NCBI GenBank assembly: GCA_907165135.1
Contig: OU015568.1
Coordinates: 16,193,208 to 16,257,207 of the forward strand
Origin: Oikopleura dioica
Taxonomy: Eukaryota; Animalia; Chordata
Length of the DNA stretch: 64,000 nucleotides
Reading direction: 5' to 3'
Position 1 is the first letter of the stretch. Every line of letters starts with the position of its first letter. Under the pieces are notes generated by a model. The model saw only the letters and a list, made by a program, of their open reading frames with translations. It did no database searches and was not told the DNA's origin. The position numbers and the translations under genes are program-made. Positions 15,091 to 39,518 of this stretch are shown here, piece by piece.

Positions 15091-15359
15091 ATAATAACCG
15101 AAGTATGAGAGAAAATCCAATCAGAAAACACAAAATAATAAACGACGAATATAAAGAGTCGGTCCAAGGGGGATCAACCAAATAAATAAAAATATACCTA
15201 TTTGAAGGGACTCCATATACATCTCACGAAAAAAATAAAAAGTTGCCTACGGAAAGGTACATCAGAGAAAAAAAAGTTCCTCCACTTTAGAAACGAAAAA
15301 CAGAACTAACTCCAAAAAAAATGCTCCAACTCAACCTAACTCCAGATTTTGACCTGAGC

Positions 15360-16211
15360 CCGATCTTTGTGTTCCTATTTCTGTTTCTGTTCTTTTGAGA
15401 TGGGCGGCCAAAAATGATTTGAAAGTTGAAGATTTTGAATCGGGAGAAGATTTTTCTCTCGAAAACATTTTCACTCTTCTGACAATGATAGTTTACCCGC
15501 GCAGTTTGGCTGGCTTCAATCTCAATCCGAAAAAAGAAGAACAAAAATTTCAAACAAACGAAATTGAATTGCTTCTCAGAAGAATGAAGTTCAGAACTTA
15601 TTTGAATCCAAGTGGATGGGAAATTTTAAAACCGGGCTTGATAGACGCGAACTTTGATTTTGAAAGAGGTTTTTATAAATAGCTAAATTCACCAGTCATA
15701 AAATATCTGCATGTAGTCCTCCTGCACCGCAATTTCGCCTTCTTCCGCCCCCTAACCGTCACCGGCTGTTACCTGAATCCCGACTTTACAATAATTTTCC
15801 ACCAAATGGTGCTGGACCGAATCGAAAACTCGGAATTTATTCTCCAGAACACTTTAATCGACCATTCCGGCTCTCAAGTCAGAATTCCTCTTTCCAGAGA
15901 ATTCTATGCTTCTTACGAAACCATGGAAGATTGCTACAACTGCCACAACGATTTTGTCTATTTCGGTGAGAACAACGAGTTTTTTGCTTTGGTCAACGAG
16001 AATTTCAATATGGAGAAAGAAAAATGGTACCTTCTGCCTCAAGCTTATTCAATAACTCTTACTAAACTTTAAGAAGATTCAGAGAACAAGGTAAAATTCA
16101 ATCTAGCTTTTAAATTCGAATTTCAATCTCTAGGCATCAAGTTCGAATTCATTGGAAAGGAAAAGAGAAACTTCAATCAGCAGGACGCCGTCTCAAAAAG
16201 TTTTTCATTAA
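15360..16211 (+). pseudogene. 5'-truncated kinase-papain gene remnant (peptidase domain only)
   Basis: Homology to 19028 onward begins abruptly at DLCVPIS. Retains HQMVL and ILQNT. Premature TAA at 16070-16072. Confidence 0.75.
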
Positions 16212-17095: not shown

Positions 17096-17484
17096 TTTAT
17101 ACTGTATTCTGTGCTCGGCACGGGGAGTTGGAAGTTGTATAGGCCAAATATGCCCAGATTTTCAAAATGATAACATGCGCAGCTTGCGAGAAATTATGAT
17201 GAAAGGGATAGAAACTTGTCTCGAAATTCAATAAAGAGGAACGTTTAAAATTAGCGATAATTAGCATGCGAAAAAGATGCATCAAAATAAAAGTGACTGT
17301 TTTTTGAAGAAAATTTTATTATCATAAATTATATTTGTCAAAGAGCCGGGAAAAGAAGCTCCTTGTTGGAAGACTCGTTTTGCTCCATGAGTTCAATCAA
17401 GTCTTCCTCTCTTTGACACATATCATATTTGCAGACTTCACAGTGCAATGACACTGTGTCCTTGCCGCGAAAGGTGGTTGGATG

Positions 17485-17506
17485 GTCACCGTTGATTGAG
17501 TAAATA
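17485..17506 (+). promoter_or_regulatory. Conserved upstream Myb-like (CAACGG, reverse strand) plus Forkhead-like (GTAAATA) motif pair
   Basis: Same two motifs with a 5-nt spacer upstream of all three kinase-papain starts (17489-17506, 21249-21266, 39320-39337). Function is inferred only. Confidence 0.35.
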
Positions 17507-17580
17507 TTTTAGTAATTCTCGGGCTGATTTTTTAGCATTTTTAACGGGAGATTTGCTCTAAGTCGTATCACATTGAAAAA

Positions 17581-19923
17581 ATGCAAGTTTCAACGCATCC
17601 AAAAGAATTGTCAAGAGAAGCTGTTGCGATATGGCTTGAAGATTTTAAAAAGAGATTGAAGAGAACGACGAGCAGAGATGATTTGGACAGATTGATTTTG
17701 TCGGTGGAGAGATACGAGTTTGAAAAAAGTAATTGTGCTGGATGGAAAAAGGTTATTTTTGAAAATGGAAAAGGAAAAATTATGCCGGAATATCTGAATG
17801 AAGAATGGGAAATAACTTCATTTCAAAAAATGATCCTCGACAAGAATCCGCAACTAGAAGGTCGAATAATAAAATGCTCAGAATTAAAAGAAGAGACCGG
17901 AGAATGGATTATCGACGAATTTCATCAGCAAAAATTAATTTCAGCCGGTGGAGAAGCGATTGTTTTTGAAGACAAATTTGGAGAATTTGAAGTCGCGGTT
18001 CGGGTTCAGGCTTTTGATTCGGCGCTTTTTACGGGGAAGAATGAAGAAATTGAATATGAAATTAATCTTTCGGAAGGTATTTTTATTTTTTTAAAATAGT
18101 TTGTCCTTTTTAAGACTACGATACCGCTCATAACGACGAAAAAGATGACGCTCAAGTTATCCCTGTTCATCAAAACGTTATCAAAAACTTCTGCAACATC
18201 GAAATTTACTCGAGCAACGACGAGAAAAGAGAAGACTGCCTCGGATGGATAACGATTATGGAGAAATGCGACGCAGATTTGAGGAGCAGATTGAAGAAAG
18301 AAGATTTGACCTTGGAAGAAAGGAAGAAAATTGCGATTGGAGTGAAAGAGGGGAGAGAGTATTTGAGGGACATTCGAATTTGGCATCTAGATCAGAAGCC
18401 GGAAAATATTTTGTTGAAAGATGGAGAATGTAAATGGATTGATTTCGGAACAATTTGGGAAGAGACTGGAAGGAAGAGCTATCGAAGAATGGGCTACGCG
18501 AGAAGAGGGAGCAAATATCGATATCCTGATTATTTATGTAAGTTTTTAATTGAAATTAGTTGAAAATATTTTGCTCGTGTTTAATTTTTTCTCAGATGCT
18601 GGATCTGCTGCCTTTTCGGAAAGTGATCAACTTTGTAAAGGAGGAAGACGAAGAGGAGATAGATCACCACTTCACATTTTGATTCTTTGCGATTGGAAGA
18701 CAGCCTGGAGTCTTCTTTTCAAACCGATCGAAGGGGACGGAAGAGAGAAAATTGAAGAAGAACTAAAGGTACGAGCTCGTTTCTGCAATTAAAGAAAAAT
18801 TTAAAGGCGTGCAATGCTGAGTGGCTCTCAAGATATTCCCCATCAACCGAAGAAATCGAAAACTTGTCAGGAATCATTTCTCTAAAAAATGCGCCTTCTG
18901 ATTTTTGCCTTGACGATCCAAATTTGACGAAATCTTCAGCAATGGCCGATCTCAAACAAAAACTTACGAAACAGATCAATTTGGACTTCGAAAACGTGAC
19001 GAAGAATGTTTTAAACCAAAGAGAAAGCGATCTTTGTGTTCCCATTTCAGTTTCTGTTCTTTTGAGATGGGCACTCAAAAATGATTTGAAAGCTGATGAT
19101 CGGAAAATGGAAAGTGATTTTCCTCTCGAAAAAATCTTCACAATTCTTACAATGATAATTTACCCGCGCAGTTTGGCTGGCTTCAATCTCAATCCGAAAA
19201 AAGAAGAACAACAATTTCAATCAAACGAAATTGAATTGCTTCTCAGAAGAATGAAATTCGAAACTTATTTGAATGAAAGTGGATGGCAAATTGTAAAACC
19301 CATCGGGATAGACGCGAACTTTGACTTTGAAAGAGGTTTTTATAAATAGCTAAATTAACCAATCAAAAAATATCTAGTCCTCCTGCATCACAAGTTCGCC
19401 TTCTCCCGCCCCTTAACCGTCACCGGCGCCTACCTGAATCCCGACGGTTCAATAATTTTCCACCAAATGGTTTTGGACCGAATCGAAAACTCCGAATTCA
19501 TTCTCCAAAATACTCTCATCGATCATTCCGGCTCTCAAATAAAAATTCCTCTTTACAGAGAATTCTATGCTTCAGAAGAAATGATGGAAGACTGCTTCAA
19601 CTGCTACAAGGATTTTGTATATTTTGGAGACAACAACGAGTATTTAGAGTTAGTCAACGAACAATTTAACATGGAAAGAGAAAAATGGTATCTTCTGCCT
19701 CAAGCTTATTCAATTACTCTTACTACGCCTCAAAAATATCCAGAAAGCTCTGAAAGTTCGGATTCAGAAAATCAGGTAAAATTTAATCTAGCTTTTATAG
19801 TCGAAATTCGATCTCTAGGCGTTCGACAAAGGAAATCATGAAGATTCGGACGAGTCGATTTTTCTAAAAGGAAAAAAGAAATTTCAATCAGCAGGACGCC
19901 GCCTCAAGAAATTTTTTCATTAA
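17581..19923 (+). CDS. Kinase-papain fusion protein copy A (~711 aa, 6 exons), apparently intact
   Basis: Exons 17581-18076, 18115-18537, 18596-18768, 18795-19335, 19378-19775 and 19819-19923 sum to 2136 nt in phase. Kinase motifs SAGGEAIV, VAVR, MEKC, HLDQKPENILL, DFG. Peptidase motifs VLNQRESDLC and HQMVLDRIENSEFILQN. Intron 3 is only 26 nt, so it is uncertain. Confidence 0.75.
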
Positions 19924-20182
19924 AAGATATTTTTGATTTAAATAAAATACAGAAAAAGAAAGAGAATTTTTATCAGGCTTTACCCTTCAGTAATTATCAA
20001 ATGTCAAACGTCATAATTAGTAGTTATTAATTACTTTTGAATTTTGCGTTTTAATATTTCAATCTCTTAGTTTGTTATTCGCAAAAATAAATATTCTCTC
20101 GAACGACATTTTTTAATCATAAATAATATTTATTAAATAGCCGGAAAGAGTAAAAATGCAGCAAAATGGAATGAACAAAGTA

Positions 20183-20775
20183 CTATCTTCTCACATCGTA
20201 GCGTGAAAACTGTTTCGAAAGCTCCAGTTTCGTGTTTCGACTGACATCTCCAAGTCGCCTTGAGAGCGAGCCCTTCTTGTCCAGCGTAAAACTACGCGCC
20301 TCCTGGACGTTGCAAACGAGCGATTCTAGCGTCGAGACGGGAACTTTGCGTTCGCTCTGTCGGGGACGCGTTATTTCGTGACTCTTGCTTCGCTGGGGCG
20401 GCGCTGGTTTCTGCGCTTTTCCGTCCTGCTCTTTTATCGGATGCAGCTTGCGCAGACGATGGCAAACTGTCGCACTAGAGAGCACAGTTACACTTCAAGT
20501 CGACGTCGGTCGCACTTACGCAGGCCACTGATGGATGATATTCAAGTTGCCATTGGCGTCGCCCGCCATCTTCGTCTTCGGCGGCAACATAACATTACTC
20601 TCCTCCTTCATCAAATACTCATTTTAGGTCAAAACATGCGTTTATTCCACGAAAATTGTACATAAACTGCAAGAGCAAAAAAATAATTTAATACGTTCTT
20701 TGCGTAAGATTCGCCAAGACTTTGTATTTGTTCTGACCCAAACGTGGCTTGGAGTGGTCTCCAAATTATGGTCTT
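20183..20775 (-). pseudogene. Partial copy of the partner gene (exons 6-7 intact, exon 5 carries a 53-nt deletion)
   Basis: 45-nt intron at 20475-20519. The last exon encodes the same protein as 24446-24737. Confidence 0.65.
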
Positions 20776-21359
20776 TTTACTGTATTCTGTGCTCGGCACG
20801 GGGAGTTGAAAGTTGTATAGGCCAAATATGCCCGGATTTTCAAAATGATAACATTCAAAACATGCGCAGCTTGCGAGAAATTATGATGAAAGGGATAGAA
20901 ACTTGTCTTGAAATTCAATAAACGAGTACGTTTAAAATTAGCGATAATGAGCATGCGAAAAAGATGCGTCAAAATAAAAGTGGCTGTTTTTGACGAAAAT
21001 TTTCTTATCAAAAATTATATTTGTTAAAGATATCAATATTATAAGTACTGGAATTTCTCCGGCACCTAGAGGAGTTCAAAAAAAGTGAGCTTCTCGTTTT
21101 ATTCATTTTGATGCAAATATTGCGACTTTTCTCAATGAATGGTTTAGTCATGCGGCATCACTGATGCCTTAATTGAACATGGAAAGTACAAAGATGAAAA
21201 AACTGCAATTGCAGTGTGTCCTTGGCGCGAGAGGTGGTTGGATGGTCACCGTTGACTGTGTAAATATTTTACAAATTCTCGGGCGGAGTTTTTAGCATTT
21301 TGAACGGGAGATTTGCTCTACATTGTAGAGTCTACATCATATCACATTTTAATTAAAAA

Positions 21360-24166
21360 ATGCAAGTTTCAACGCATCCAAAAGAATTGACAAGAGAAGC
21401 TGTTGAGAAATGGCTGGAAGATTTTAAAAAGAAATTGAAAAGAACGACAAGCAGAGATGATTTGGACAGATTGATTTTGTCGGTGGAGAGAAAAGATTTT
21501 AAATATCATTCTTATGCTGACTGGGAGGCGGCTATTTTTGAAAATGGAAAAGTCTCGTTTCCGAATAAATGGCGAGAAAATGGGGGGCTAACCAAAATCA
21601 GTAAGTCTGGAGCTAGGACATGACACCGTAGAACCAAATAAGAAAGTATCATACATTCAAGGACCGAATAAGAAAGTATCATACATTGAAGAACGGAATA
21701 AGAAAGTATCATACATCGAAGGATCGAACTATAATGGAAATCCAATCCAAGAACGATGCAAAATTGGATCGGGCATACATTTGAAAATCCATACGGATGG
21801 GTTTCTTATAGGCCGGTAGGCCTAATACGGCAATCTTATTGGTTCCAAAAAATGTGATCCTTTAATGCATGATACTAATCTAATTTGGTACTTGAATGTA
21901 TGATACTTTCTTGTTCCGTTCTTGGATGTCCCGTCCTAGCTCCAAACTTACTGATTTTGGTTTGAGCCTAAAATGGGCAATAACTTCATTTCAAAAAATG
22001 ATCCTCGACAAGAATCCGCAACTAAACGGTCGAAAAATAAAACGCTCAGAACTTAAAGAAGAAACCGGAGAATGGACTATCGACGAATTTCTTCAGCGAA
22101 AATTAATTTCAGCTGGAGGAGAAGCGATTGTTTTGGAAGAAAAATTTGGAGAATTGAAAGTTGCGGTTCGGGTTCAGGCTTTTGACTCGGCGCTTTTTAC
22201 GGGGAAGACTGAAGAAATGGAATATGAAATTAATCTTTCCAATGGTATTTATATTTTCTTAAAATAGTTTCTCCTTTTTAAGACTACGATACCGCTGATA
22301 ACGACGAAAAAGATGACGCTGAAGTTATTCCTGTCCATCCAAACGTGATTAAAAACTTCTGCAACATCGAAATTTTCTCGAGAAAAGACGAGAAAAGACA
22401 CGACTGCCTTGGATGGATTACGATTATGGAGAAATGCGACTCAGATTTGAGAAGCAGATTGAAGAAAGAAGATTTGAGCTTGGAAGAGAGGAAGAAAATT
22501 GCGATTGGAGTGAGAGCGGGATACGAGTATATGGAGAGCATTGGAATTTGGCATCGCGATCCGAAGCCGGAAAATATTTTATTGAAAAATGGAGAATGCA
22601 AATGGATTGATTTTGGAACTATTTCGGAAAAAACTGGAAGAGAGAGCTATCGAAGAATGGGCTTCGCGAGGGAAGGGAGCAAATATAGAGATTATAGCTA
22701 TTTATGTAAGTTAAAAATTGAAATTAGTTGAAAATAATTTGCTCGTGTGTTTATTTTTTCTCAGATGCTGGATCTGCTGCCTTTTCGGAAAGTATTCAAC
22801 TTTGTGAAGGAGGAGGAGGAGGAAGTTCACCACTTCACGTTTTCATTCTTTGTGATTGGAAGACAGCGTGGAGTCTTCTTTTTAAACCGATCGAAGGAGA
22901 CGAAAGAGATAAAATTAAAGAAGAACTAAAGGTACGAGCTCGTTTCTGCGGACTAAACCAATTTTTGGAAGTGTATATTTGGATTCCCAATAAGATTGCT
23001 GTATTTGGCCTACCGGCCAATAAAAACCCTTTCCATAAAATTTAGTTCCAAAAATTGGTTTTACCCGTTTCTGCAATTAAAGAAACATTTCAAGTCGTGC
23101 AATGCTCAGTGGCTCCCAAGACGGATTCCATCAACCGAAGAAATCAAAAACTTGTCAAAAATCATATCTTTAAAAAACGCGTCTTCTGCTTTTTGCCTCG
23201 ATGATCCTTATTTGACAAAGTCTTCGGCAATGGCCAATCTCAAACAGAAACTGACAAGACAAATCAATTTCGACTTCAAAAATGTGACGAAAAATGTTTT
23301 AAATCAGAAAGAAAGCAATCTTTGTGTTCCCATTTCGGTTTCTGTTCTTTTGAGATGGGCGGCCAAAAATGATTTGAAAACTGATCATTGGAAAATGGAA
23401 GGATATTTTACTCTCGAAAAAATCTTCACAAAACTGACGATGATAATTTATCCGCGCAGTTTGGCTGGTTTCAATCTAAACCCGAAAAAAGAAGAACAAG
23501 AATTTCAAACAAACGAAATTGAATTGCTTCTTAGAAGAATGAAGTTCAGAACTTATTTGAAAGAAAGTGGATGGGAAATTGTAAAACCCATCTCGATAAA
23601 CGCGAACTTTGATTTTGAAAGAGGTTTTTATAAATAGCTAAATTCACCAGTCATAAAATATCTAGTCCTCCTCCATCATAACTTCGCGTTCACCCGCCCC
23701 TTAACCGTTACCGGCTGTTACCTGAATCCCGACGGTTCAATAATATTCCACCAAATGGTGCTGGACCGAATCGAAAACTCCGAATTCATTCTCCAAAACA
23801 CTTTAATCGACCTTTCCGGCTCTCAAATCAGAATTCCTCTTTCCAGAGAATTCAATGCTTCTGAAGAAATGATGAAAGATTGCTACAACTGCCACAACGA
23901 TTTTGTATATTTTGGAGACAACAACGAGTATTTAGAGTTAGTCAACGAACAATTTAACATGGAAAAAGAAAAATGGTATCTCCTGCCTCAAGCTTACTCA
24001 ATTACTCTTACTAAAACTCAAAAAGATTCAGAAAGCTCTGAAAGTTCGATTGACGATGATGATTCAGAAAACCAGGTAAAATTCAATTAAGCTTTTATAT
24101 TCTAGTTTTTAACATAAGATGTTCGACAAAGGAAATTCTGAAGATTATTGGAGCAGTGACGAATAA
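21360..24166 (+). CDS. Kinase-papain fusion copy B; exon 1 interrupted by a MITE (possible pseudogene)
   Basis: Same exon layout as copy A. HRDPKPENILL, DFG, NQKESNLC, HQMVL and ILQNT are present. Insertions at 21585-21969 and 22949-23067. Confidence 0.65.
21585..21969. mobile_element. hAT-like MITE with internal 30-bp repeats
   Basis: About 35-bp TIR ggct(c)aaccaaaatcagtaagt(c/t)tggagctaggac. Probable 8-bp TSD aaaatggg. Three copies of aataagaaagtatcatacat. Absent from copies A and C. Confidence 0.75.
22949..23067. mobile_element. 119-bp mini-MITE inside intron 3 of copy B
   Basis: TIR cgg..aaaccaatttttggaa / ttccaaaaattggttttacccg. TSD tttctg. The internal segment is shared, inverted, with 21795-21850. 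Confidence 0.7.
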
Positions 24167-24445
24167 ATTTTGAAGAAACTTAAATCATCTTTATCATATA
24201 ACTATGTTGATTATATCATATTTTTGGTTAAAATAAAGAAAGAAGGAGAATTTTTATCAGTCTTTATTCTGCAGTAATTATCAAACGTCATAATTACTTT
24301 TGAATTTTGCGTTTTATTCTCTCAATTCCTTAGTTCGTTTTTCGCAAAAATAAATATTCTCTCAGACGACACTTTTAGTTATAAATAATATCTATTAAAG
24401 AGCCAGGAAAAAGAAGAAATGCAGCAAAAATAAATGAACAAAGTA

Positions 24446-26412
24446 CTATCTTCTCACATCGTAGCGTGAAAACTGTTTCGAAAGCTCCAGTTTCGTATTT
24501 CGACTTACATCTCCAAGCCGCCTCGAGAGCGAGCCCTTCTTGTCCAGCGTGAAGCTCCGCGCCTCCTGGACGTTGCAAACGAGCGACTCCAGCGTCGAAA
24601 CGGGAACTTTTCGTTCGCTCTGTCGGGGGCGCGTTATTTCGTGGCTTTTGCTTCGCTGGGGCGGCGCTGGTTTCTGCGCTTTTCCGTCCTGCTCTTTTAT
24701 CGGGTGCAGCTTGCGCAGACGATGGCAAACCGTCGCACTAGAGAGCACAGTAATAATTCAAGTCTGCATCGCTCACACTTACGCTGGCCACTGATGGATG
24801 ATATTCAAGTTGCCATTGGCGTCGCCCGCCATCTTCGTCTTCGGCGGCAACATAACATTACTCTCCTCCTTCATCAAATACTCATTTTAGGTCAAAACAT
24901 GCTTTTATTCCACGAAAATTGTACATAAACTGCAAGAGCAAAAATATAATTTAATACGTTCTTCGCGTAAGATTCGCCAAGACTTTGTATTTGTTCTGAC
25001 CCAAACGTGGCTTGGAGTGGATCTCTTTGCTTGTGTGCGATTGCCGTGGCGATTGTTTTGATACTTTTTCCAGGTAAGAAATTATGGCCTTTTTACTGTT
25101 TACTGAGCTTGGCACCCTGTGTAGAAAACCTGAGTCAGGGTCCGAAAAAGCTGAAACTAAAGCCGCGCAGCGGCTTCTTTTAAAAACGAAGCCGCGAAGC
25201 GGCTTTGCTTATATATTTTTCTATTAAATACTGGCGAAGCCGCTCTGCGGCTTCGTTTGCAAAAAAGCCGCGGTGCGGCTTTTGTTTTAGACTTTTCAGA
25301 CCATGACTCAGGTTTTCTCCACAGGTTTCCTAGCGCAGCTACTGTATCTCCATCTTGAAAATGATTTAAATTCTTACCCCTGCCTTGTATTCTCGGCGAG
25401 TTAAGTTTCCCTGGTGAGAGTTGGAGGCGATCGTTATTGCATATTAGCTTTTTCATATTCAATGGCTTCATTATGATCCTGTTCAGCGGCATTGCGTGCT
25501 GCTCTCCTGAATTCCATGTTAATCTCCCTTTCCCAATAATGACTTTACCTTTTGACGAGCGCTGCATCAGAAGATCGGAAAGGCGTTTCTTGAGTTCGAT
25601 AGGATCCACTGGAGCCGAGAATTGTTTATGCTGTGTTATGTCTAAATCCGAAATCAAGGAAGAGAATGAAAACCGAAAACTTACCGGGAATTACTTTTTG
25701 CTTATCATTGCTGTGTGGTATCTTTGCTGAAGCTGTTCGATTTTTCGTCTTTGATTCTGAGAATTTGCGCGATCGATTCGCCGCCGTCTGGTTTGGCGGG
25801 TTCGGCTTTGGTCGACGCTTTTTCGGAATCAGCACGACCGGCGGGTCGAAATTAGACGGCCGCTTCCACGGACCAAACTCAGTGTAGCACTCTTCTTCTT
25901 GAGGCATCCATTTTAGTTTACACAGACGCTTTGAAATCTCCACCACCATCTATCAAATAAATTATATTTTTGTCAATGGTTATCGAAACTGACCTTGGGT
26001 ACGGCAGCTTCCATTCGCTCCTTTAGCTCTTTTACGTCCGTTATTTTCGAGTAGTCATAAGGATTGTCCATGTCCTGGGAGTTGAGTAACGGCAGCTCTC
26101 GTAGCAGACGATAGTTTTCACCTTGTTTTCCATAGATATCTAAGAATTGCTTGGTAAAGGTTCTATGAGTATTCTTACGTATGTCAGGCTCCTTGTTGGA
26201 AGACTCGCTCTGCTCCATGAGTTCGATCAAGTCTTCTTCTCTTTGACACATATCCATGTAGAAATTTACGATGCTGCTTTTATCCTCTGATCCTTGGACT
26301 TCTTTGGCGGACCTTTTCTTTTTGACGCTCTCCTTGTTAATGATTATGGTCTGTACTTTTGACGCAGTCTTACCTTGATGGTCCGCCGTCGCGGCCCATT
26401 TTCATTTTTCAT
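24446..26412 (-). CDS. 475-aa basic hypothetical protein (convergent partner of the kinase-papain gene), 7 exons
   Basis: Exons 26412-26374, 26332-25994, 25949-25685, 25641-25378, 25088-24958, 24880-24783 and 24737-24446 total 1428 nt. All GT-AG and in phase. Divergence from the paralogous last exon is synonymous only. Confidence 0.7.
25105..25345. mobile_element. CCTGAGTCAGG-family MITE in intron 4 of the partner gene
   Basis: tgtagaaaacctgagtcagggt ... gactcaggttttctccacagg, with internal aagccgc..gcggctt hairpins. Confidence 0.8.
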
Positions 26413-27307: not shown

Positions 27308-29076
27308 ATGGTAGAAGAGAGCAAAATTTCGTTTCTCAGCAAACTTAGTTTTTTCTCCTCGATTGGTGGGCTTTTATTTGGCTATGATACAGGGGTTGTT
27401 TCTGGGGCGTTACTCTTAGGAACGATTTGAAATCGGGGTTAATTTAACGGTGGATGATTGAAATGAAAATCGGAAAAAAGTAACCGAGGAATTCAAATTG
27501 ACAACGATCGAGCAAGAACTGGTGGTAACATCGACGATCGCGTTCGCGGCAATATTCTCCCTTGCGGCTGGTTTTCTCAATGCACAATTGGGACGCAGAT
27601 TGACCATTATTATTTCATCCTTTCTATTTGCTCTTGGTTCAGTATGCATGGCTGCTTCTTCTGGATTCGCAACATTGATGATTGGAAGAGCGATTGTTGG
27701 AACTGGTCTGGGAGTATCTTCCATGTCGATTCCGCTGTATTTATCCGAATGTGCGCCGTCGGATGTCAGAGGCAAAATTGTGACTGTAAATAACCTCTCG
27801 ATCACGGGCGGTCAACTTATCGCTGCTCTCATCGACGGGGCATTTAGTAAAGTCCCTGGTGGTTGGCGCTGGATGCTCGGTCTTGCCTTCATTCCTGCTG
27901 TGATACAGTTCTTGGGCTTCATATTTCTTATGCCGGAATCCCCCCGTTACATCATCGAGCACAAAACATACTACGAAGCAAAAGAAGTCCTTGCCAAGAT
28001 TCGAGCTGACGATGACGTCGATGAAGAGCTCGACGAGATGAAGCGGGAAGTAGAATTGAACAAGCACTCGAATTGGCGCGATCTTTTCAAAACAAAAAAT
28101 GGAAGACACGCGAGTTTCATCGGATGTTGCCTGCAATTATTCCAGCAGCTTGTCGGGATAAATACGGTCATGTACTACAGTGCGACTATTATTTACATGT
28201 CTGGAATGGTAACAAATCCATCCGCTGCAATCTGGCTCGCCGCACTTACAGCTTCAGTTAATTTCGGCGCCACTCTCATCGGCTTGTTTTCGATAGAGCG
28301 AATCGGTCGTCGAATTCTAGCTCTCATTTCTGTCGCTGGGAGCTTTGCTAGCCTTCTTTTACTCTCAGGTGGCTTTTACTGGAACGATTCTCTGGAAGAA
28401 AAAGTCACGAGCAATGGAACGGACGCACACTGCAACTCTTACTTCAATGAAATTTGTGGAAATTGCGTTTCCGACGCCTCCTGTGGATTTTGCTCTCAAA
28501 ACGGCGTACAAAGCTGTCTACCAGTCAACCAATCGACTTGCACAAATGATAATGGCTCGTTTTGGTCGGAAGAGTACTGCCCAAAAACTACTGCTTCGTG
28601 GATGCCTCTTCTCGGCATGATTTTATATTTGTTTTTCTTCGCGTCTGGAATGGGACCCGTTCCATGGGCAGTCAACTCCGAGATTTTTCCGCATAGTTGT
28701 CGGGAGGCAGGGATAGCCTTGTCAACTACAGGAAAGGGGTTTGTTTTTCAGCAATTAACAGTTCATATGGGACTTTTTATTGAATTATATTCACAAAATC
28801 AAACCCATAAAAGTCAACTGGCTCTCCAACTGCATCATCTCTCTGACTTTTTTATCCTTACTCGAAGCGGTCGGAACAGCTGGCGGATTTCTAGTGTACT
28901 CAATCTTCGCACTAGTAGCTCTTATCGTCTTGTTCTTATTTCTTCCCGAAACAAAAAGCGTGCCGCTAGAAGACATCGCCGAAGTCCTCGAAGAAGGATG
29001 GATCGTTCCTTTCAAAAGAAGCTGCAATCCAGAAGAAAACGACTTACAGGTCTTAGTTGATGACACTGACGACTGA
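27308..29076 (+). CDS. SLC2A13: MFS sugar porter, proton myo-inositol cotransporter (HMIT)-like, 3 exons
   Basis: GGLLFGYDTGVVSG, GRR, PLYLSECAP, PESPR, QQLVGINTVMYYS, GMGPVPWAVNSEIFP and PETK motifs. Cys-rich loop typical of HMIT. Introns 27420-27480 and 28732-28813 are GA-AG. Confidence 0.85.
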
Positions 29077-29352: not shown

Positions 29353-29969
29353 TTAATGAGCTTTTGAAAGCGAGAATAAATAAGGTAGAACCTGGTTTGG
29401 AGTTAGAGTTATTAAATACGCTTGTGGCAGGAGATACCACTTTTCTATTTTCATATTGAAATTTTCGTTGACCAAAGAAAAAGACTCGTTGTTGTCTCCA
29501 TAATATACAAAATCGTTGTAGCAGTTGTAGCATTCTTTCATCATTTCTTCTGAAGCGTAGAATTCGCGAGAAAGAGGAATTCGGACTTGAGAGCCAAAAT
29601 GGTCGATTAAAGTGTTTTGGAGAATGAATTCGGAGTTTTCGATTCGGTCAAGCACCATTTGGTGGAATAATATTGAGCCGTCGGGATTGAGGTAACAACC
29701 GGTGACGGTTAAGGGACGGGAGAAGGCGAAGTTGTGATGCAGGAGAACTAGAAATGTGATGAATAATTAGTTTGACTCTTTAAAACCTTTTTCATAATCA
29801 AATTTCTGTTCTCTGTAAATGTATTTTATACTATCCCATCCACTTTTATTCAAAAAGTTCTGAACTTCATTCTTCTGAGAAGCAATTCGATTTCGTTTTC
29901 TTGAAACTGTTGTTCTTCTTTTTCGGGTTGAGATTGAAGCCAGCCAAACTGCGTGGATAAATTACCATT
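29353..29969 (-). pseudogene. 3' part of kinase-papain copy C (after the foldback insertion)
   Basis: Continues TM|VIYPRSLAGFNLNPKKEE and contains HQMVLDRIENSEFILQNT. Joins 37606 exactly when the element is removed. Confidence 0.8.
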
Positions 29970-30383
29970 GGGACGGAAAAATATAAATTTTCGGTTTTGA
30001 CAAAATGTCGAAAACGTAACATTTTCAAAATTCTAAAAGTGCAGTTATCTCAAGCCTGAACTGCGATTCAAGAATTTTGAAAAAATTTTGTGATTTCATT
30101 ATTACGAAGCGTGGGCGGCGCGATCTAAGAAAAAGTTATGAACTCGCCTAGGGACCAGGCGTACTTATTTTTCAGATTTTTTAGACTCAATTATTCTCTA
30201 TGATCCAAGGATTGTCACAATTGCTTCAGATCGAAAATTGCTCATCGCAATCCTGAAATATTGCGTAATTTGTTATTTTCTCGTATAAACTATTAAATTA
30301 TTAAACCAATACTAATTATATTGAATAAATGGCCATGCTCGGCCGTTATATGGCCACTTATGGTCGAATTCGGTCGAGTCTGG

Positions 30384-30830
30384 CCGGAGGACTTCCCGGA
30401 GGACCACCCTGGTGGAAAACTAACTGCTGGAAGACCAATATTAAAAAAAAATAATAAATAGCCTAAGAGGAACAATTATTGCCACTTTTGTCGAGCTTTG
30501 GTCATTTTCTGCCGGAGGACCTCCCGGAGGACCAACCTGGTGGAAGACTATCTGCTGGAAGACCAATATTAACAAAAAATAATAAATAGCCTTACAGGAA
30601 CAATAATTGACATTTTCGGCAAGCTTTGGTCATTTTCTGCCGGAGGACCTCCCGGAGGACCAACCTGGTGGATGACTTACCGCTGGAAGACCAGTTTTAA
30701 CAAAAATTTCTGGATGACCATACAGGGCCAATAATTGCCATTAATGGCTAGTTTTGGTCATTTTCTACCGGAGGACTTTCTAAAGGACCGCCCTAAAGGA
30801 AAAATAACTACTTAAAGACCAACATTTGAG
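30384..30830 (+). repeat. 128-bp tandem repeat x~4 (left arm; mirrored at ~36745-37190)
   Basis: ccggaggac units start at 30384, 30512, 30640 and 30768. Confidence 0.85.
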
Positions 30831-31039
30831 AAACATTTGAAAAACCGTTTGGACCCTTTTGCTAAAAACCAACTATCTCAGGGCCAATATAACAAAAATT
30901 GCCTAAACAGTCAAAAAAACTTTGGGATGCCATAAATCCATGATAGACACAACAGAAACTGCATGTTTCTTAAAACCGTTTTCTTCGATATTATGCGTAA
31001 ACAAAGCCTTAACATAAATTAAACTAAGTCTGAGAATCA

Positions 31040-32130
31040 AAGCCGACCCGAAGGGAAGGCCACGCCTGTTTATTAAATTCAGTCAGGAACAGGACGAAGC
31101 CGACCCGAAGGTAAGGCCACACCTGTTTATTCAATTCAATCAGGGACAGAGCGAAGCCGACCCGAAGGGGAGGCCACGCCTGTTTATTCAATTCAGTCAG
31201 GGACAGGGCGAAGCCGACCCGAAGGGGAGGCGACGCCTGCTAATTCAATCCAGTCAGGGACAGGGCGAGGCTGGACCGAAGGGGAGGCAACGCCTTATTA
31301 TTAAATTCAGTCAGGGATAGGGCGAAGCCGACCCGAGGGGGAGGCAGCGCCTGTTTATTCAATTCAGTCAGGGACGGGGCGAAGCCGACCCGAAGGGGAG
31401 GCAACGCCTGTTCATTCAATGCAGTCAGGGATAGGGCGAAGCCGACCCGAAGGGGAGGCCACACCTGTTTGTTCAATTCAGTCAGGGACGGGGCGAAGCC
31501 GACCCGAAGGGGAGGCATCGCCTGTTTTTACGATTCAGTCAGGGACGGGGCGAAGCCGACCCGAAGGGGAGGCAACGCCTCTTTATTAAATTCAGTCAGG
31601 GACAGGGCGAAGCCGACCCGAAGGGGATGCCAGGCCTTTTTATATAATTCAGTCAGGGACCGGGTAAAGCAGACCCGAAGTGGAGGCAACGCCTGTTAAT
31701 TAAATTCAGTCAGGGACAGGGCGAAGCCGATCCAAAGGGGAGGCCAGGCCTGTTTATTCAATCGAATTGAGAGGGAACCAAGCCGACCCGAACGGGGGCA
31801 GTCCCATTTATATAATTCAGTCTGAGACAAGGCCAAGCCGACCCGGAGGGGGGGCAGCTTCGATCAGACAAGTCAGTCTCAAGATGGGCCAAGCCGACGC
31901 GAAGGATCGGCCAGTCCCGATTAGACAATTCAGTCTGAGGTGGGGCCAAGCCGACCCGAAGAGGAGGCATGCCCTGTTTACTTTATCCAGGTTAAGACGG
32001 GGCCAAGCCGACCCGAAGGGAAGGCCAGTCCCGTTAATTCAATTTTGTCCGAGACGGTGCAAAGCCGACCCGAAGAGGAGGCAAGCCCTGTTTACACTAT
32101 TCAGTCTGAAACGGGGCCAAGCAGACCCGA
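31040..32130 (+). repeat. 57-bp tandem array, left arm (~19 units)
   Basis: Unit cagtcagggacagggcgaagccgacccgaaggggaggcaacgcctgtttattcaatt. Units decay toward the inside. Confidence 0.9.
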
Positions 32131-33764
32131 ATTATCTCCTCGATCGCAGCTAAGGCACGTTGCTTCTGCAAACAAGTCTTAGGCGCCTGGAGCACAAATC
32201 CACATGTCCGCCCTTGAAGCCCACTTTGGACAATTTGATTATAGCCCTGGCCGCTTGTCGGAGAAAGCTTGCCGCAGCTGCTGAGGGTAAAGTCAAACTA
32301 GATTTCATCTAAGCTTATGGGCACTGTCATGTCCCAAAAGAGCCGTTCAAAGTGATAGACTGCTTAATCGTCTTTTTCGACAGATATTTCTTTAAAATGT
32401 ATTCTAGTCATGTTTTTTTCTACAAGAATGCATTCAAGAACAAAATTCTTGCTTTTCAACAAAAAGTTTCTGCTGACTTTCTGAGTCGATAATGAACAAT
32501 TTTCTCCAGAATTTTGGTTAAATATCTTGAAAAAAAACACAAGAACCACTGAACTAACATCGGACACAGAAGTGTTGCTTCAAATAGTTGCTACTAGCCG
32601 TTTTGTGGTACAAGGGCTCGGGGTCTAGACAACCTGGTATGACACAACAAAAACTTTGACCTCGAAAAAATCTGAAGAAAAAAGAATTGAGCATGTCATA
32701 ATTATTAAGTTTTTGAAATTAAAATTATAAAAATAATAATAATAATTGGTCATTATAATTTTGAAGTGTCAATCGTATTATCTCTGTCTCTCTCTTATAT
32801 ATCTCTTCAAACTGTTTTTGTTTTGATTAAAAACTCATATTTTCAAGACGCTCTAGAAGAAAAAATAACAAACAAAATACTGCTTGATTTCGCAATATTT
32901 ATTTTGGTGCCAGGTTCTGATAAAAATCGGTCCGAACAAAGGGTCAACTTCCGCCGAGAACAATGGGCTCAACCCTCGGGGGGAACAAAAAGATCCATGT
33001 TGCTCGGACCCCGGCACTAAATTCTAACTACTGAGGTGAAATTCTTTCAGTGATGATTGCAGATTGTTAGTGTTCTTTTTCAGCTTCTTTTCGAATTCTC
33101 GGAAGCTTCTTGAAATTTTTGTACTGTTCTTAGGGCTGAAAATGATAGAAGTGACGAACTCGGAAGAAAAGCTCGAATTTCATTATTCTATGATTCAGTT
33201 TTAATAATTATATTGTAAAATAAATTTATCGCAAGAAATCAGAGTGTTTGAGAGGCTTGACTTAATCTTTGTTTCTTTGCATCCTCGGTAAATGACATAT
33301 TTTTTTGATCAATTCTATCCAAACATCATCAAAGATGCATCCTCGAAGATGGGAGTCTGGATTCTCCATCGGTCAAAGCTTCATATATGCAACATCGAAG
33401 AAAGAATCGTCGTTGATGCCGCGTTTCTTCATATAAAGTGTCGTCTTGCATCGACATTTGTTCAGCATTCTTTTTAAACATTCTATCCTAGTTTTTCAAG
33501 GAAACTCTTAACAGATTTGAAACCTCCAGCCCAAAATAAGTACAACGGGCGACATAAACGTTTATTCGATTCGAAATTTGAACATTTCTGTGGAACACTT
33601 GTTCTCGGACAAAGAGCTTGTTTTCTTATTTTCAGTCAGAAAGCGCAATAAATTCGACATGTACTCGTCGATCCATTACCATCATCATCAAATTCCTCAA
33701 ATTCTATTTTAATCGGTGATCTGAAGGAATTAAATAAACTGGACTGGCCGACCCTTCGGATGGT

Positions 33765-34199
33765 TGACGGCGGGAGTGAGTCTTTGTAAAGACTGAGTCT
33801 TCGCGCAAAGACTCAGTCTTTTTCTTCGGGCAGTGAGTCTTTTTTTTAGAAAAATAAAAGACTGAGTCTTTTTCGAACAATTGTTTACGTCTCTAGAAAA
33901 AAATTTGTTATTTCTTCTGAATCATTTCTATCCATCAGTTTCTTATTGAACATGAAGGAATAACCTAAAAGTCAGTAAAAATGACATTTCAAACCATTTT
34001 CTGACCGTCTGTGCGTTCCGCGCTTGTCTTAGAGGAAATTCATTGATAAAACAGGTTATACGTTTACCGCTTCGACTATATTTTCAAGTTGAAAAAGTTT
34101 CTAGAACAAAGACTCACTCCCGCCGTTACCGCGCGGTGACGGCGGGAATGAGTCTTTACAAAAAGACTCAGTCTTTACAAAGACTGACTCCCGCCGTCA
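33765..34199. mobile_element. Nested MITE inside the foldback element
   Basis: TIR tgacggcgggagt(g/c)agtctttgtaaagactgagtctt / aagactcagtctttacaaagactgactcccgccgtca. Confidence 0.65.
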
Positions 34200-36540
34200 C
34201 CCCTTCGGATCGGCTTTGCCCCGTCTAAGACTGTATTAAACAAATAAGACTGCCCCCTTCGGGTCTGCTTGGCCCCGTTTCAGACTGAATAGAGTAAACA
34301 GGGCATGTCTCCCCTTCGGGTCGGCTTCGCCCTGTCCCTGACTTAAAAAACAGGCATTGCCTCCCCTTCGGGTCGGCTTTGCCCCGTCCCTGACTGAATT
34401 ATATAAAGAGGCCTGGCCTCCCCTTCGGGTCGGCTTCCCCCTCTCCCTGACTTAATTTTATAAACAGGCGTTGGCTCCCCTTCGGGTCGGCTTCGCCCCG
34501 TCCCTGACTGAATTGAAAAATTAGGCGATGCCTCCCCTTCGGGTCGGCTTTGCCCCGTCCCTGACTGAATTATATAAGGAGGCCTGGCCTCCCCTTCGGG
34601 TCGGCTTCCCCCTCTCCCTGACTTAATTTTATAAACAGGCGTTGGCTCCGCTTCGGGTCGGCTTCGCCCCGTCCCTGACTGAATTAAAAAAACAGGCGAT
34701 GCCTCCCCTTCGGGTCGGCTTCGCCCTGTCCCTGACTGAATTGAATAAACAGGCGATGCCTCCCCTTCGGGTCGGCTTCGCCCCGTCCCTGACTGAATTG
34801 AAAAATTAGGCGATGCCTCCCCTTCGGGTCGGCTTTGCCCCGTCCCTGACTGAATTATATAAGGAGGCCTGGCCTCCCCTTCGGGTCGGCTTCCCCTCTC
34901 CCTGACTTAATTTTATAAACAGGCGTTGGCTCCGCTTCGGGTCGGCTTCGCCCCGTCTCTGACTGAATTAAAAAAACAGGCGATGCCTCCCCTTCGGGTC
35001 GGCTTCGCCCTGTCCCTGACTGAATTGAATAAACAGGCGATGCCTCCCCTTCGGGTCGGCTTCGCCCCGTCCCTGACTGAATTGAAAAAACAGGCGTAGC
35101 CTCTCCTTCGGGTCGGCTTTGCCTCGTCCCTGACTGAATTGAATAAAGAGGCGTTGCCTCCCCTTCGGGTCGGCTTCGTTCTGTTCCTGACTTAAAAAAC
35201 AGGCGTTGCCTCTCCTTCGGGTCGGCTTCGCTCTATCCCTGACTGAATTTAAATATAAGGCGTGGCCTCCCCTTCGGGTCGGCTTCGCCCCGTCTCTGAC
35301 CGAATTGAAGAAATAGGCGTTGCCTCCCCTTCGGGTCGTCTTCGTCCCGTCTCTGACCGAATTGAAAAAACAGGCGTTGCCTCCCCTTCGGGTCGGCTTC
35401 GCCCCGTCCCTGACTGAATTGAAAAAACAGGCGTAGCCTCTCCTTCGGGTCAGCTTCGCCCTATCCCTGACTGAATTTAATAATAAGGCGTGGCCTCCCC
35501 TTCGGGTCGGCTTCGCCCTATTCCTGACTGAATTTAATAATAAGGCGTGGCCTCCCCTTCGGGTTGGCTTCGCCCTGTCCCTGACTGAATTTAATTAACA
35601 GGCGTTGCCTCCCCTTCGGGTCGGCTTCGCCCCGTCCCTGACTGAATTGAAAAAACAGGCGTAGCCTCTCCTTCGGGTCAGCTTCGCCCTATCCCTGACT
35701 GAATTTAATAATAAGGCGTGGTCTCCCCTTCACGTCGGCTTCGCCCTATTCCTGACTGAATATAATAATAAGGCGTGGCCTCCCCTTCGGGTCGGCTTCG
35801 CCCTGTCCCTGACTGAATATAATAATAAGGCGTGGCCTCCCCTTCGGGTCGGCTTCGCCCTATCCCTGACTGAATTTAATAATAAGGCGTTGCCTCTCCT
35901 TCGGGTCGGCCTCGCCCTGTCCCTGACTGAATTGAATTAACAGGCGTGGGCTCCCCTTCGGGTCGGCTTCGCTCTGTCCCTGATTGAATTGAATAAACAG
36001 GTGTGGCCTTACCTTCGGGTCGGCTTCGCCCTATCCCTGACTGAATTTAATAATAAGGCGTTGCCTCCCCTTCGGGTCAGCCTCGCCCTGTCCCTGACTG
36101 AATTGAAATAACAGGCGTCGCCTCCCCTTCGGGTCGGCTTGGCCCTGTCCCTGACTGAATTGAATAAACAGGTGTGGCCTTACCTTCGGGTCGGCTTCGC
36201 CCTGTCCCTGACTGAATTGAATAAACAGGCGCTGCCTCCCCCTCGGGTCGGCTTCGCCCTATCCCTGACTGAATTTAATAATAAGGCGTTGCCTCCCCTT
36301 CGGTCCAGCCTCGCCCTGTCCCTGACTGGATTGAATTAGCAGGCGTCGCCTCCCCTTCGGGTCGGCTTCGCCCTGTCCCTGACTGAATTGAATAAACAGG
36401 CGTGGCCTCCCCTTCGGGTCGGCTTCGCTCTGTCCCTGATTGAATTGAATAAACAGGTGTGGCCTTACCTTCGGGTCGGCTTCGTCCTGTTCCTGACTGA
36501 ATTTAATAAACAGGCGTGGCCTTCCCTTCGGGTCGGCTTT
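34200..36540 (-). repeat. 57-bp tandem array, right arm (~41 units), inverted relative to the left
   Basis: Unit gcctccccttcgggtcggcttcgccctgtccctgactgaattgaataaacaggcgat. Confidence 0.9.
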
Positions 36541-37605
36541 GATTCTCAGACTTAGTTTAATTTATGTTAAGGCTTTGTTTACGCATAATATCGAAGAAAA
36601 CGGTTTTAAGAAACATGCAGTTTCTGTTGTGTCTATCATGGATTTATGGCATCCCAAAGTTTTTTTGACTGTTTAGGCAATTTTTGTTATATTGGCCCTG
36701 AGATAGTTGGTTTTTAGCAAAAGGGTCCAAACGGTTTTTCAAATGTTTCTCAAATGTTGGTCTTTAAGTAGTTATTTTTCCTTTAGGGCGGTCCTTTAGA
36801 AAGTCCTCCGGTAGAAAATGACCAAAACTAGCCATTAATGGCAATTATTGGCCCTGTATGGTCATCCAGAAATTTTTGTTAAAACTGGTCTTCCAGCGGT
36901 AAGTCATCCACCAGGTTGGTCCTCCGGGAGGTCCTCCGGCAGAAAATGACCAAAGCTTGCCGAAAATGTCAATTATTGTTCCTGTAAGGCTATTTATTAT
37001 TTTTTGTTAATATTGGTCTTCCAGCAGATAGTCTTCCACCAGGTTGGTCCTCCGGGAGGTCCTCCGGCAGAAAATGACCAAAGCTCGACAAAAGTGGCAA
37101 TAATTGTTCCTCTTAGGCTATTTATTATTTTTTAATATTGGTCTTCCAGCAGTTAGTTTTCCACCAGGGTGGTCCTCCGGGAAGTCCTCCGGCCAGACTC
37201 GACCGAATTCGACCATAAGTGGCCATATAACGGCCGAGCATGGCCATTTATTCAATATAATTAGTATTGGTTTAATAATTTAATAGTTTATACGAGAAAA
37301 TAACAAATTACGCAATATTTCAGGATTGCGATGAGCAATTTTCGATCTGAAGCAATTGTGACAATCCTTGGATCATAGAGAATAATTGAGTCTAAAAAAT
37401 CTGAAAATAAGTACGCCTGGTCCCTAGGCGAGTTCATAACTTTTTCTTAGATCGCGCCGCCCACGCTTCGTAATAATGAAATCACAAAATTTTTTCAAAA
37501 TTCTTGAATCGCAGTTCAGGCTTGAGATAACTGCACTTTTAGAATTTTGAAAATGTTACGTTTTCGACATTTTGTCAAAACCGAAAATTTATATTTTTCC
37601 GTCCC

Positions 37606-39223
37606 ATTGTCAGATGAATGAAGATTTTTTCGAGAGTAAAAAATCCCTCTATCTGATAATCGGTAAATGGGACAATTGTATCTTTTAAATCATTTTTTAT
37701 TGCCCATCTCAAAAGAACAGAAACCGAAATTGGGACACAAAGATTGCTTTCTTTTTGGTTAAATACATTCTTCGTCACGTTTTTGAAGTCGAAATTAATC
37801 TGTCTTGTCAGTTTCTGTTTGAGATTGGCCATTGCCGACGACTTAGTCAAATTTGGATCATCCAGGCAAAAATTTGGAGGCGCGTTTTTAGAGAAATTAT
37901 TTTTGACAAGTTTTTGATTTGTTTGGATGAGGGAGTTTCGTTTGATAGCCACTCAGCATTACATGCCTTGAATATTTCTTCAATTGCAGAAACAAGCTCT
38001 TTAAGAGGTAATACCTTTAGTTCTTTCTTGATCTTTTCTCTCTCGTCTTCTTCGATCGGTTTGAAGAGAAGGCTCCAGGCTGTTTTCCAATCACAAAGAA
38101 TCAAAACGTGTAGTGGTGAATACGCGTGTATTCTTCCTGCTCCTGCTTCACAAAGTTGATTACCTTCCGAAAAGGCAGCAGATCCAGCAACTGAGAAAAA
38201 ATATAACACGAGCTAATTATTTTCAAATAATTTCAATTCAAAACTTACACAAGTACCCATAAGCTCTATATTTTGCCCCTCTTCTCGCATAACCCATTCT
38301 TCTGTAGCTTTCCCTTCCAGTGTTCTCTTGAATTGTCCCAAAATCGATCCATTTGCATTCTTCATTTTTCAGTAAAATATTTTCCGGCTTCTGATCGCAA
38401 TGCAAAATTCCAATGCTCGCCAAGTACTTGTATCCATCTTGAACTCCGATCGCAATTCTCTTCCTTTCTTCTAAACTCAAATCTTCTTCTTTCAGTCTGC
38501 TTCTCAAATCGAATTCGCACTTTTCCATAATCGTAATCCATCCAAGGCAGTCCTCTCTTTTCTCGTCTTTGATTGAGTAAATTTCGATATTGCAGAAGTT
38601 TTTGATCACGTTTGGATGAACCGGGATAACTCGAGCGTCGTCTTCTTCGTAGATTTCAGCGATTTCGTAATCTTAAATTTGAGAAAATCAAAACATAATA
38701 AATAATTATAATAACCTTCGGAAAGATTAATTTCAAACTCAATTTCTTCATACTTCTCCACAAAAAGCGCCGAGTCAAAAGCCTGAACGCGAACGGCGAC
38801 TTCAAATTCTCCAAATTTTTCATTCGAAACAATCGCTTCTCCTCCGGCTGAAATTATTTTTTCCTGAAAAAATTCATCGAGAATCCATTCTCCAGTTTCT
38901 TCTTTCAGTTCTGAGCGTTGAATCATTCTCCCTTCGAGTTGCGGATTAATGTCGAGGATCATTTTTTGAAAAGAAGTTATTTCCCATTCTTCTGAAAAAA
39001 TTTTCTTCCAAAGCTTTCCAAAAACTTTTCCTTTTCCGTTTTCAAAAATGACCTCATCCCATCCAGCACAATCTTCATCTTCAAAGTCGTATCTCTCCAC
39101 GGACAAAATCAATCTGTCCAAATCTTCTCTGCTGGTCGTTCTCTTCAATTTCTTTTTGAAATCTTCCAGCCATTTTTCAACAGCTTCTCTTGTTAATTCT
39201 TTTGGATGCGAGGAAACTCGCAT
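37606..39223 (-). pseudogene. 5' part of kinase-papain copy C (inverted), disrupted by the foldback element
   Basis: MRVSSHPKELTREAVEKW..., VAVR, HCDQKPENILL, DFG, NQKESNLCVPIS. One-base deletion in a homopolymer at 37885-37889. Confidence 0.8.
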
Positions 39224-39518
39224 TTTTATAATTAAAATGTGATACGTCTTGGAGCAAATCGCCCGTAAAAAATCCTGAAAAATCCGCCCGAGAAATACAA
39301 GAATACCTTGAAGAATAGGTATTTACCCAGTCAACGGTGGACTATTCAACCACCTCTCGCGCCAAGCACACACTGCAATTGTTTCATCCTACTGTACTTC
39401 CCAAGGTCAATGAAGAAACCAAAAACCCGTTGAATGAGAAAAGTCGCAATGTTTGTATCGGGGTCCCTGATTCAGGGAAGTATTGAGAGTAGAGCTTGAC
39501 TGGCGGGCGGCCAGGTGG

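Follow-up and report, generated by a model that had tools for sequence, protein, structure and literature searches.

The 64,000-nucleotide (nt) stretch of the Oikopleura dioica genome analyzed here (contig OU015568.1; hereafter, the window) carries a multicopy gene in which a kinase-like region precedes a cysteine-peptidase-like region, and its intact copy, copy A, is the subject of this report. We think it probable, with some reserve, that copy A represents an intact member of a large family of ~700-amino-acid (aa) proteins made up of a kinase-fold domain, a linker, and a papain-fold enzyme, in which the peptidase is likely active and the kinase fold serves as a switch. More specifically, the product would begin with an N-terminal helical region, continue through a strongly divergent eukaryotic protein kinase (ePK)-fold domain and a linker of ~70 aa, and end in a papain-fold cysteine-peptidase-like domain. 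Each fold is well known on its own; neither their combination in an animal protein nor the sequence family to which the peptidase belongs was found in the libraries and papers searched. Coordinates of all features are collected in Table 1.

RESULTS

Copy A encodes a kinase-fold domain and a peptidase domain in one frame

Joining six exons across five introns, all of which carry GT-AG boundaries (38, 58, 38, 42, and 43 nt, respectively), gives the copy A product of 707 aa. Introns of such length (38 to 58 nt) are typical of Oikopleura. An initial annotation of this DNA, made by splicing the gene by hand, had arrived at 711 aa and had called for an intron of 26 nt; the six-exon join corrects the former, and the latter is unnecessary, as the five introns above suffice to keep the frame open. 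An AATAAA sequence is located at 19941, 18 nt past the stop codon. The kinase motifs and residue spacings reported in that annotation are all present in the corrected product, i.e., SAGGEA (aa 121 to 126), MEKC (~aa 211 to 214), HLDQKPEN (aa 256 to 263), and DFG (aa 275 to 277), and, in the C-terminal domain, Gln435 followed by Cys441 (+6) and His569 followed by Asn585 (+16). The product also contains AVRV (aa 139 to 142). The N terminus of copy A is hydrophilic as judged by eye, and a helical region precedes the kinase-fold domain.

The copy A product is colinear with its paralogs and ungapped at exon junctions 1 to 4. Independent evidence comes from a Tara Oceans contig of 1,543 nt (L001; PRJEB4352), in which an uninterrupted 449-aa open reading frame (ORF; positions 155 to 1504) covers everything from the DFG motif to the C-terminal limit of the peptidase domain, the linker included. 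This contig encodes a divergent relative that lacks introns in the region and forms a very long branch in the peptidase-domain tree. The coverage of both parts by a single ORF in L001 indicates that the kinase and peptidase parts constitute one protein. The proposed fusion of a kinase-fold domain to a peptidase domain in one frame is thus upheld by the gene model, the colinear paralogs, and the L001 ORF alike.

Between the two domains lies the motif FCLDDPNLTKS, most positions of which are retained in 40 to 45 of ~48 family members, a degree of conservation that nearly equals that of the catalytic residues. In both of the paralog models described below, the motif is positioned directly upstream of a low-confidence loop or disordered stretch. 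Speculatively, it might serve for docking or as a site of processing.

The C-terminal domain is predicted to adopt a papain fold

We modeled the C-terminal domain with AlphaFold2, using residues 66 to 372 of paralog P0083 and an 85-row family alignment that included the copy A exons. The resulting model had a mean predicted local distance difference test (pLDDT) score of 82.5, with values of >90 in the core. Foldseek comparison against the PDB returned weak E-values (0.06 to 0.4), and the top matches were nearly all clan CA proteins (C39 domains, cathepsins, AvrPphB, and staphopain). By means of VIA-align, we obtained Z-scores of 9 to 10 over ~150 to 160 residues to ficin, cathepsins S, K, and L, mexicain, and papain (maximum, 10.1), as well as 8.8 to 9.3 over ~125 to 128 residues to the C39 domains of PCAT1 and ComA. 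Likewise, in a wide structure search independent of Foldseek, the best 50 of 48,161 chains were all papain-fold proteins and nearly all cysteine peptidases; matches in this search included xylellain (Z 10.0), Der f 1, cathepsin B, PCAT1, PeiR, staphopain, UfSP, ATG4, ZUFSP, streptopain, IdeS, and the viral papain-like protease PLpro. The three comparisons agree on the paralog model, according to which the C-terminal domain has the papain (clan CA) fold that had initially been proposed for it.

The key residues occupy corresponding places in the predicted structure. Gln79 of the model is followed by Cys85, which opens a helix (residues 85 to 100), while His218 falls within a strand (215 to 226) and Asn234 comes just after another (229 to 233). 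Several of the VIA alignments begin at model residue 79 (Gln), set opposite residue 19 of papain-family chains. In papain, residue 19 is the oxyanion Gln, and Cys25 is the nucleophile. The structural alignments thereby bear out the earlier equation of the Gln/Cys pair with Gln19/Cys25 of papain, and the order and secondary structure of His and Asn in the model are consistent with the triad arrangement of clan CA.

By sequence, the domain belongs to no known family that our searches covered. At E-values up to 10, Pfam gave nothing for the C-terminal ~280 aa in the copy A exons, seven paralogs, or 23 isolated domains, and Peptidase_C1 (PF00112) in particular had no match at that threshold in the copy A exons, the paralogs, or the 23 isolated domains. 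Pfam likewise gave no match of the domain to C39 (PF03412), and the domain is located C-terminal to a kinase fold, not on an ABC transporter. No I29 pro-region was matched in Pfam, the stretch upstream of the domain being kinase fold and linker, and no signal peptide was evident in copy A by eye. NCBIfam and PADLOC returned nothing for the C-terminal domain, and PDB sequence profiles returned only a chance match to EsaI (E ~1). Among viruses, exon 5 had no relative in the viral contigs searched, and the only Foldseek match to viral structures was a weak one, to an uncharacterized mimivirus protein (E 3e-3). Judged on these searches, the peptidase domain is a sequence family of its own that the domain libraries searched do not recognize.

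Across the 31 complete domains that we aligned (~40% mean column identity), Gln and Cys are present in all 31, His in 30, and Asn in 27; the alignment contains 11 invariant columns, Gln and Cys among them. The C-terminal domain is likely a protease, and this fold may also support other thiol chemistries.

The kinase-fold domain is divergent and keeps its catalytic loop

The Pfam profile Pkinase (PF00069) matched exon 2 alone (39.4 bits versus a cut-off of 31.7; profile positions 75 to 152), and Pkinase matches in copy A and its paralogs were confined to profile positions 75 to 160. For the complete architecture, we modeled paralog P0127 at full length (pLDDT 84.6; predicted template modeling [pTM] score 0.85), and the pTM score suggests a compact two-domain unit. 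Compared with ePK kinases, this model reached a Foldseek probability of 1.0 (CMGC kinases). VIA Z-scores were 10 to 12, with all of the top 50 chains being kinases or pseudokinases and ULK4 being the best (Z 11.9); the neighbors of the model in fold include ULK4, PINK1, BRAF, RIPK, RNase L, IRAK3, IRAK, PKR, and IRE1. Since Z-scores of 10 to 12 are low for a comparison of one kinase with another, the domain must be considered very divergent.

Throughout the family, the catalytic Asp, Lys, and Asn are each present in 49 of 49 members, as are the Asp and Gly of DFG, the Phe of which is found in 48 of 49. The glycine-rich loop has the consensus EGGEA. At the position of the β3 Lys (VAIK), 42 of 43 members carry Arg, as seen in the AVRV of copy A. 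The P0127 model has only a four-residue helix between β3 and the next strand, in place of αC. That the catalytic loop is invariant speaks against a purely dead domain; the kinase part may be an active, if atypical, enzyme or a switch that binds nucleotides.

The family is expanded in O. dioica

Scanning 1.84 billion representative proteins by HMMER with exon 4 as the query, we obtained 69 matches, and word-indexed searches gave 40 and 53 matches for two paralog queries and 150 for a profile of the isolated domain. All named matches were from Oikopleura dioica, and the remainder were short marine metagenome contigs. Apparent non-tunicate matches in the HMMER scan (P0042, Chitinophaga; P0062) proved, for the two of three that we compared, to be short repeated motifs without the Cys and are regarded as spurious. 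Going by these matches, the range of the family known so far is O. dioica plus unnamed marine metagenome fragments. O. dioica holds at least 50 clusters at 90% identity, and many of the paralogs are 690 to 720 aa long with the same domain order. Copy A itself was absent from the matches in the protein database, and no paralog is more than ~48% identical to it over its full length.

Database entries for these proteins read "unnamed protein product," "Protein kinase domain-containing protein," or "Uncharacterized protein." Dozens of O. dioica copies thus carry only kinase or uncharacterized labels, so an enzyme family in a model chordate is effectively unannotated. Public gene models often mishandle intron 4, losing the frame or stopping there. 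In the literature that we searched, we found no description of the family or of a kinase-peptidase architecture. The initial annotation had not recognized the architecture from standard gene sets, and indeed no domain library or paper searched describes a fusion of kinase and papain folds.

Residues 1 to 27 of P0127 and P0082 include a hydrophobic segment of ~20 residues (MLEFSILAILATCIAGMIQIA...), predicted to be a helix, that is absent from copies A, B, and C. With a hydrophobic N terminus in some subfamilies, localization may differ between subfamilies.

The window copies arose by segmental duplication

A tblastn search of the 64-kb window with the copy A product located four copies (A, B, C, and a remnant), of which copy A alone is intact and three are broken. 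In copy B, exon 1 is interrupted by an insert of 373 bp resembling a miniature inverted-repeat transposable element (MITE), the 84-nt inverted arms of which (21590 to 21673 and 21879 to 21962; 86% complementarity) enclose three internal tandem repeat units of 30 nt. Reading the sequence for a way to splice around this insert, we found no GT-AG pair that restores the frame. In copy C, exon 4 is split between ...EKIFIHLTM and IYPRSLAG by ~7.6 kb of inserted DNA (29992 to 37605), and the copy has accumulated three frameshifts in addition to this 7.6-kb insertion. The C-terminal tail of copy A is recognizable in the remnant and is shorter in copy B.

As had been reported, Gln, Cys, His, and Asn are kept in copies A, B, and C, and the remnant, from which the Gln has been cut off and lost, retains Cys, His, and Asn. 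Because the window copies are ~73 to 86% identical to each other in protein sequence, retention of the four residues within the window is weakly informative; the informative evidence is their conservation across the family. In the peptidase-domain tree, the window copies form a clade of their own (support 89/100), set apart from the annotated paralogs by a long stem.

Introns are found at matching positions across the window copies, and the intergenic DNA was duplicated together with the genes (85 to 89% identity). The shared intron positions and the co-duplicated intergenic DNA rule out a mobile-element origin of the copies, and the latter indicates a segmental tandem array plus one inverted copy rather than transposition. 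The ratio of nonsynonymous to synonymous substitution rates (dN/dS) is 0.34 overall for copy A versus copy B and 0.16 to 0.22 for the other pairs, and it is lowest on the peptidase exons (0.21 to 0.27). Purifying selection has therefore acted on the window copies during most of their history, and it follows that the lesions in copies B and C are probably recent.

A stretch of 120 to 190 nt located 5' of the start codons is also conserved (17444 to 17560 in copy A, 21204 to 21320 in copy B, and 39225 to 39415 in copy C), copy A being 90% identical to copy B and 72% to copy C; it may represent a shared promoter, 5' untranslated region, or trans-splice region.

DISCUSSION

A peptidase that may be controlled by a kinase-fold switch

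Our preferred interpretation is that of a two-domain enzyme whose kinase-fold module would switch the C-terminal enzyme in response to nucleotide or phosphorylation, by analogy with the layout of IRE1 and RNase L. The case for gating of the peptidase by the kinase fold is drawn from the fusion itself, the high pTM score, and this same analogy, and is thus inferred. The protein would be intracellular, to judge from the hydrophilic N terminus of copy A, for which a cytosolic location is plausible. Thiol-dependent hydrolysis of peptide or isopeptide bonds is the most likely activity predicted for the peptidase domain, because Gln, Cys, His, and mostly Asn are kept under purifying selection.

Several observations count against this interpretation: (i) the models are of paralogs 44 to 52% identical to copy A and not of copy A; (ii) in these models, the Gln is at the edge of a low-pLDDT loop; (iii) Asn is replaced in 4 of the 31 domains; (iv) of two degenerate paralogs, P0007 (CBY13560.1) has Ser for the nucleophile Cys, and P0075 (CAG5107870.1) has Phe for the His and is without the kinase catalytic loop and DFG; and (v) given Arg for the β3 Lys and the missing αC helix, the kinase-fold domain may be a pseudokinase.

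Alternative explanations

The alternative that fares best, although we hold it to be unlikely, is that the papain-fold domain is active but is not a general protease, being instead a deubiquitinase or protease of ubiquitin-like proteins, an enzyme of C39-like leader processing, or one of transglutaminase, acyltransferase, or deamidase type. Such activities are represented among fold matches of similar score, namely, C39 (Z 9.3), UfSP (7.9), a contact-dependent inhibition (CDI) toxin (7.9), a phytochelatin-synthase-like protein (7.4), ATG4 (7.2), and ZUFSP (7.0), and the domain has no sequence membership in C1; the lack of a signal peptide by eye and of an I29 match is, moreover, atypical of C1A proteases. 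However, the highest Z-scores and the longest aligned stretches are those of C1 peptidases, and the Gln-x5-Cys and His-x15-Asn spacings are those of papain.

We give rather less credence to a fast-turnover intracellular system of immunity or genetic conflict, in which detection of a signal by the kinase-fold module would set free a protease effector. The expansion is large and known only from this lineage (the 90%-identity clusters of O. dioica given above), the genes are arranged in tandem arrays whose copies are often killed by transposon insertion, the window copies form their own clade, and the neighbors of the kinase fold include RNase L, IRAK, RIPK, PKR, and IRE1. In contrast, the dN/dS values of 0.16 to 0.34 are purifying and reveal no diversifying selection at this resolution; Pfam searches of the copy A exons and paralogs found no recognizable sensor or death-fold domain; PADLOC matches reflected generic kinase similarity only; and birth and death of multiple copies would fit reproductive, digestive, or house-building roles, too. 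A more specific version, an intracellular sensor-effector in which nucleotide binding or oligomerization of the kinase-fold switch would unleash the papain-fold protease and in which conflict with viruses or selfish elements would drive turnover, strikes us as similarly doubtful.

It is more improbable still that the family consists of pseudoenzymes or scaffolds, or is decaying, with a dead kinase and with Cys and His kept for structural reasons only. The replacement of the catalytic Lys by Arg in all but one of 43 members would fit such a state, as would the paralogs that have lost the Cys (P0007) or both the His and the kinase catalytic loop (P0075) and the three broken copies among the four in the window. 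Against this, ~30 to 50 paralogs, at a mean column identity of 23 to 40%, show no variation at the kinase Asp, Lys, and Asn, the DFG Asp and Gly, or the peptidase Gln and Cys, and no part of the gene is under stronger constraint than the peptidase exons (dN/dS 0.21 to 0.27).

Finally, two adjacent genes wrongly joined by hand-splicing would be a highly improbable explanation: several public gene models (P0103, P0098, and P0007) do stop after exon 4 or lose the frame there, but the intron phases fit, no stop or start lies between the two parts, full-length public models of 692 to 719 aa have the same domain order, and both the colinear alignment of copy A with its paralogs and the uninterrupted L001 ORF extend across the two parts.

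Comparison with known systems

The two-domain enzyme that we favor has partial counterparts in four known groups. It shares with the papain family (C1A; papain, ficin, and cathepsins S, K, L, and B) the two-lobed fold (Z 9 to 10 over 150 to 160 residues) and the order Gln...Cys...His...Asn at spacings of +6 and +16, with Cys at the start of a helix and His/Asn on a β hairpin; in this fold, the helical lobe comes first and the β-barrel lobe second. It differs in that identity in structural alignments is 8 to 16%, the sequence SDLCVPISV stands in place of a CGSCWAFS-type motif, no Peptidase_C1 or PDB profile, no I29, and (by eye) no signal peptide was detected, and the domain is fused behind a kinase fold. 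The C39 peptidases (PCAT1, ComA, and LahT) similarly consist of a compact papain-fold domain fused to another module, are cytosolic in their C39 domains, and align at Z 8.6 to 9.5 with a root mean square deviation (rmsd) of 2.8 to 3.1 over ~125 to 130 residues. Their partner, however, is an ABC transporter rather than a kinase fold, and the domain described here is eukaryotic and, with additional helices and strands, has about double the length.

With regard to the kinase-fold domain, the closest parallel is to kinases with an altered β3 Lys (KSR, ULK4, IRAK3, and the RNase L pseudokinase), which have the same ePK fold with the Lys of VAIK replaced; KSR has Arg at this position. The present family differs from these in that the catalytic-loop Asp, Lys, and Asn and the DFG Asp and Gly are invariant, αC is reduced to four residues in the model, and similarity to any kinase is low.

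IRE1 and RNase L each place an effector enzyme under the control of the kinase or pseudokinase domain that precedes it in the fusion. The layout of an N-terminal region, a kinase fold, and a C-terminal hydrolytic effector in one chain is the same, whereas the effector there is a KEN RNase and here would be a papain-fold thiol enzyme (predicted), and no sensor domain was recognized here. Regulation by dimerization or nucleotide, as in IRE1 and RNase L, is pure analogy for the Oikopleura family.

Were the peptidase active and under control of the kinase fold, it would represent a new wiring of a switch to a protease, and a tractable one, as copy A is a compact, intact gene of 2.3 kb that should lend itself to direct expression. 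Were the sensor-effector version true, the family would stand beside IRE1 and RNase L as a counterpart with a protease output. Its kinase domains, in addition, form a natural series in which Arg replaces the catalytic Lys and the other catalytic residues are kept.

Features of the window

TABLE 1 Features of the 64-kb window, with positions counted from its first nucleotide
Feature	Position(s)	Strand	Basis or remarks
Copy A, intact gene	17581..19923	+	Six exons, 707 aa, single open frame
Copy A exons	17581-18076, 18115-18537, 18596-18768, 18807-19335, 19378-19775, 19819-19923	+	
Divergent protein-kinase-fold domain	17941..18768	+	Pfam Pkinase on exon 2, paralog model
Kinase parts: G-loop SAGGEA	17941-17958	+	
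Kinase parts: Arg141 of β3 AVRV	18001-18003	+	
Kinase parts: HLDQKPEN	18384-18407	+	
Kinase parts: DFG	18441-18449	+	
Kinase parts: αF-like CDWKTAW	18688-18708	+	
Linker motif FCLDDPNLTKS	18903..18935	+	Copy A aa 397-407, between kinase and peptidase domains
Predicted papain-fold (clan CA) cysteine-peptidase-like domain, core	19017..19775	+	Interrupted by intron 4 (19336-19377)
Peptidase key residue Gln435	19017-19019	+	
Peptidase key residue Cys441	19035-19037	+	
Peptidase key residue His569	19461-19463	+	
Peptidase key residue Asn585	19509-19511	+	
Last exon, acidic then basic tail	19819..19923	+	Specific to subfamily (AFDKGNHED...RRLKKFFH)
Remnant copy	15356..16111	+	5'-truncated inside exon 4 just before Cys; stop codon in C-terminal tail; tblastn, translations
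Copy B	21360..24168	+	Exons 2-6 open, exon 1 interrupted, tail shortened
MITE-like insert, 373 bp, in copy B exon 1	21590..21962	none	Inverted-repeat search
Copy C, 5' part	37605..39223	-	Exons 1 to mid-exon 4, frameshift in exon 4; tblastn
Copy C, 3' part	29383..29992	-	Remaining exon 4 and exon 5, two more frameshifts; tblastn
Exon of unrecognized gene, 55 codons	16582-16746, 20315-20479, 24578-24742	-	Convergent with kinase-peptidase gene
Sugar-transporter (major facilitator superfamily, MFS) ORFs	27498-29060, 39483-39956	+	One adjoining each copy C part
Sulfotransferase-like ORF	44371-45267	+	

At least one exon of another gene is located between the copies, and this minus-strand exon, listed in Table 1, is identical in protein sequence in three repeat units, with 25 of 25 pairwise nucleotide differences falling at third codon positions. 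It had no relative in Pfam or the PDB, and when we looked at three further members of the family, located on different scaffolds, the adjoining DNA contained no trace of it. We considered a two-gene cassette as a family-wide system and rejected it: the exon is real, and, being missing beside those three members, it is a local passenger of the duplication rather than a family-wide partner. The wider neighborhood consists of ordinary host genes, including those for a sugar transporter and a sulfotransferase-like protein.

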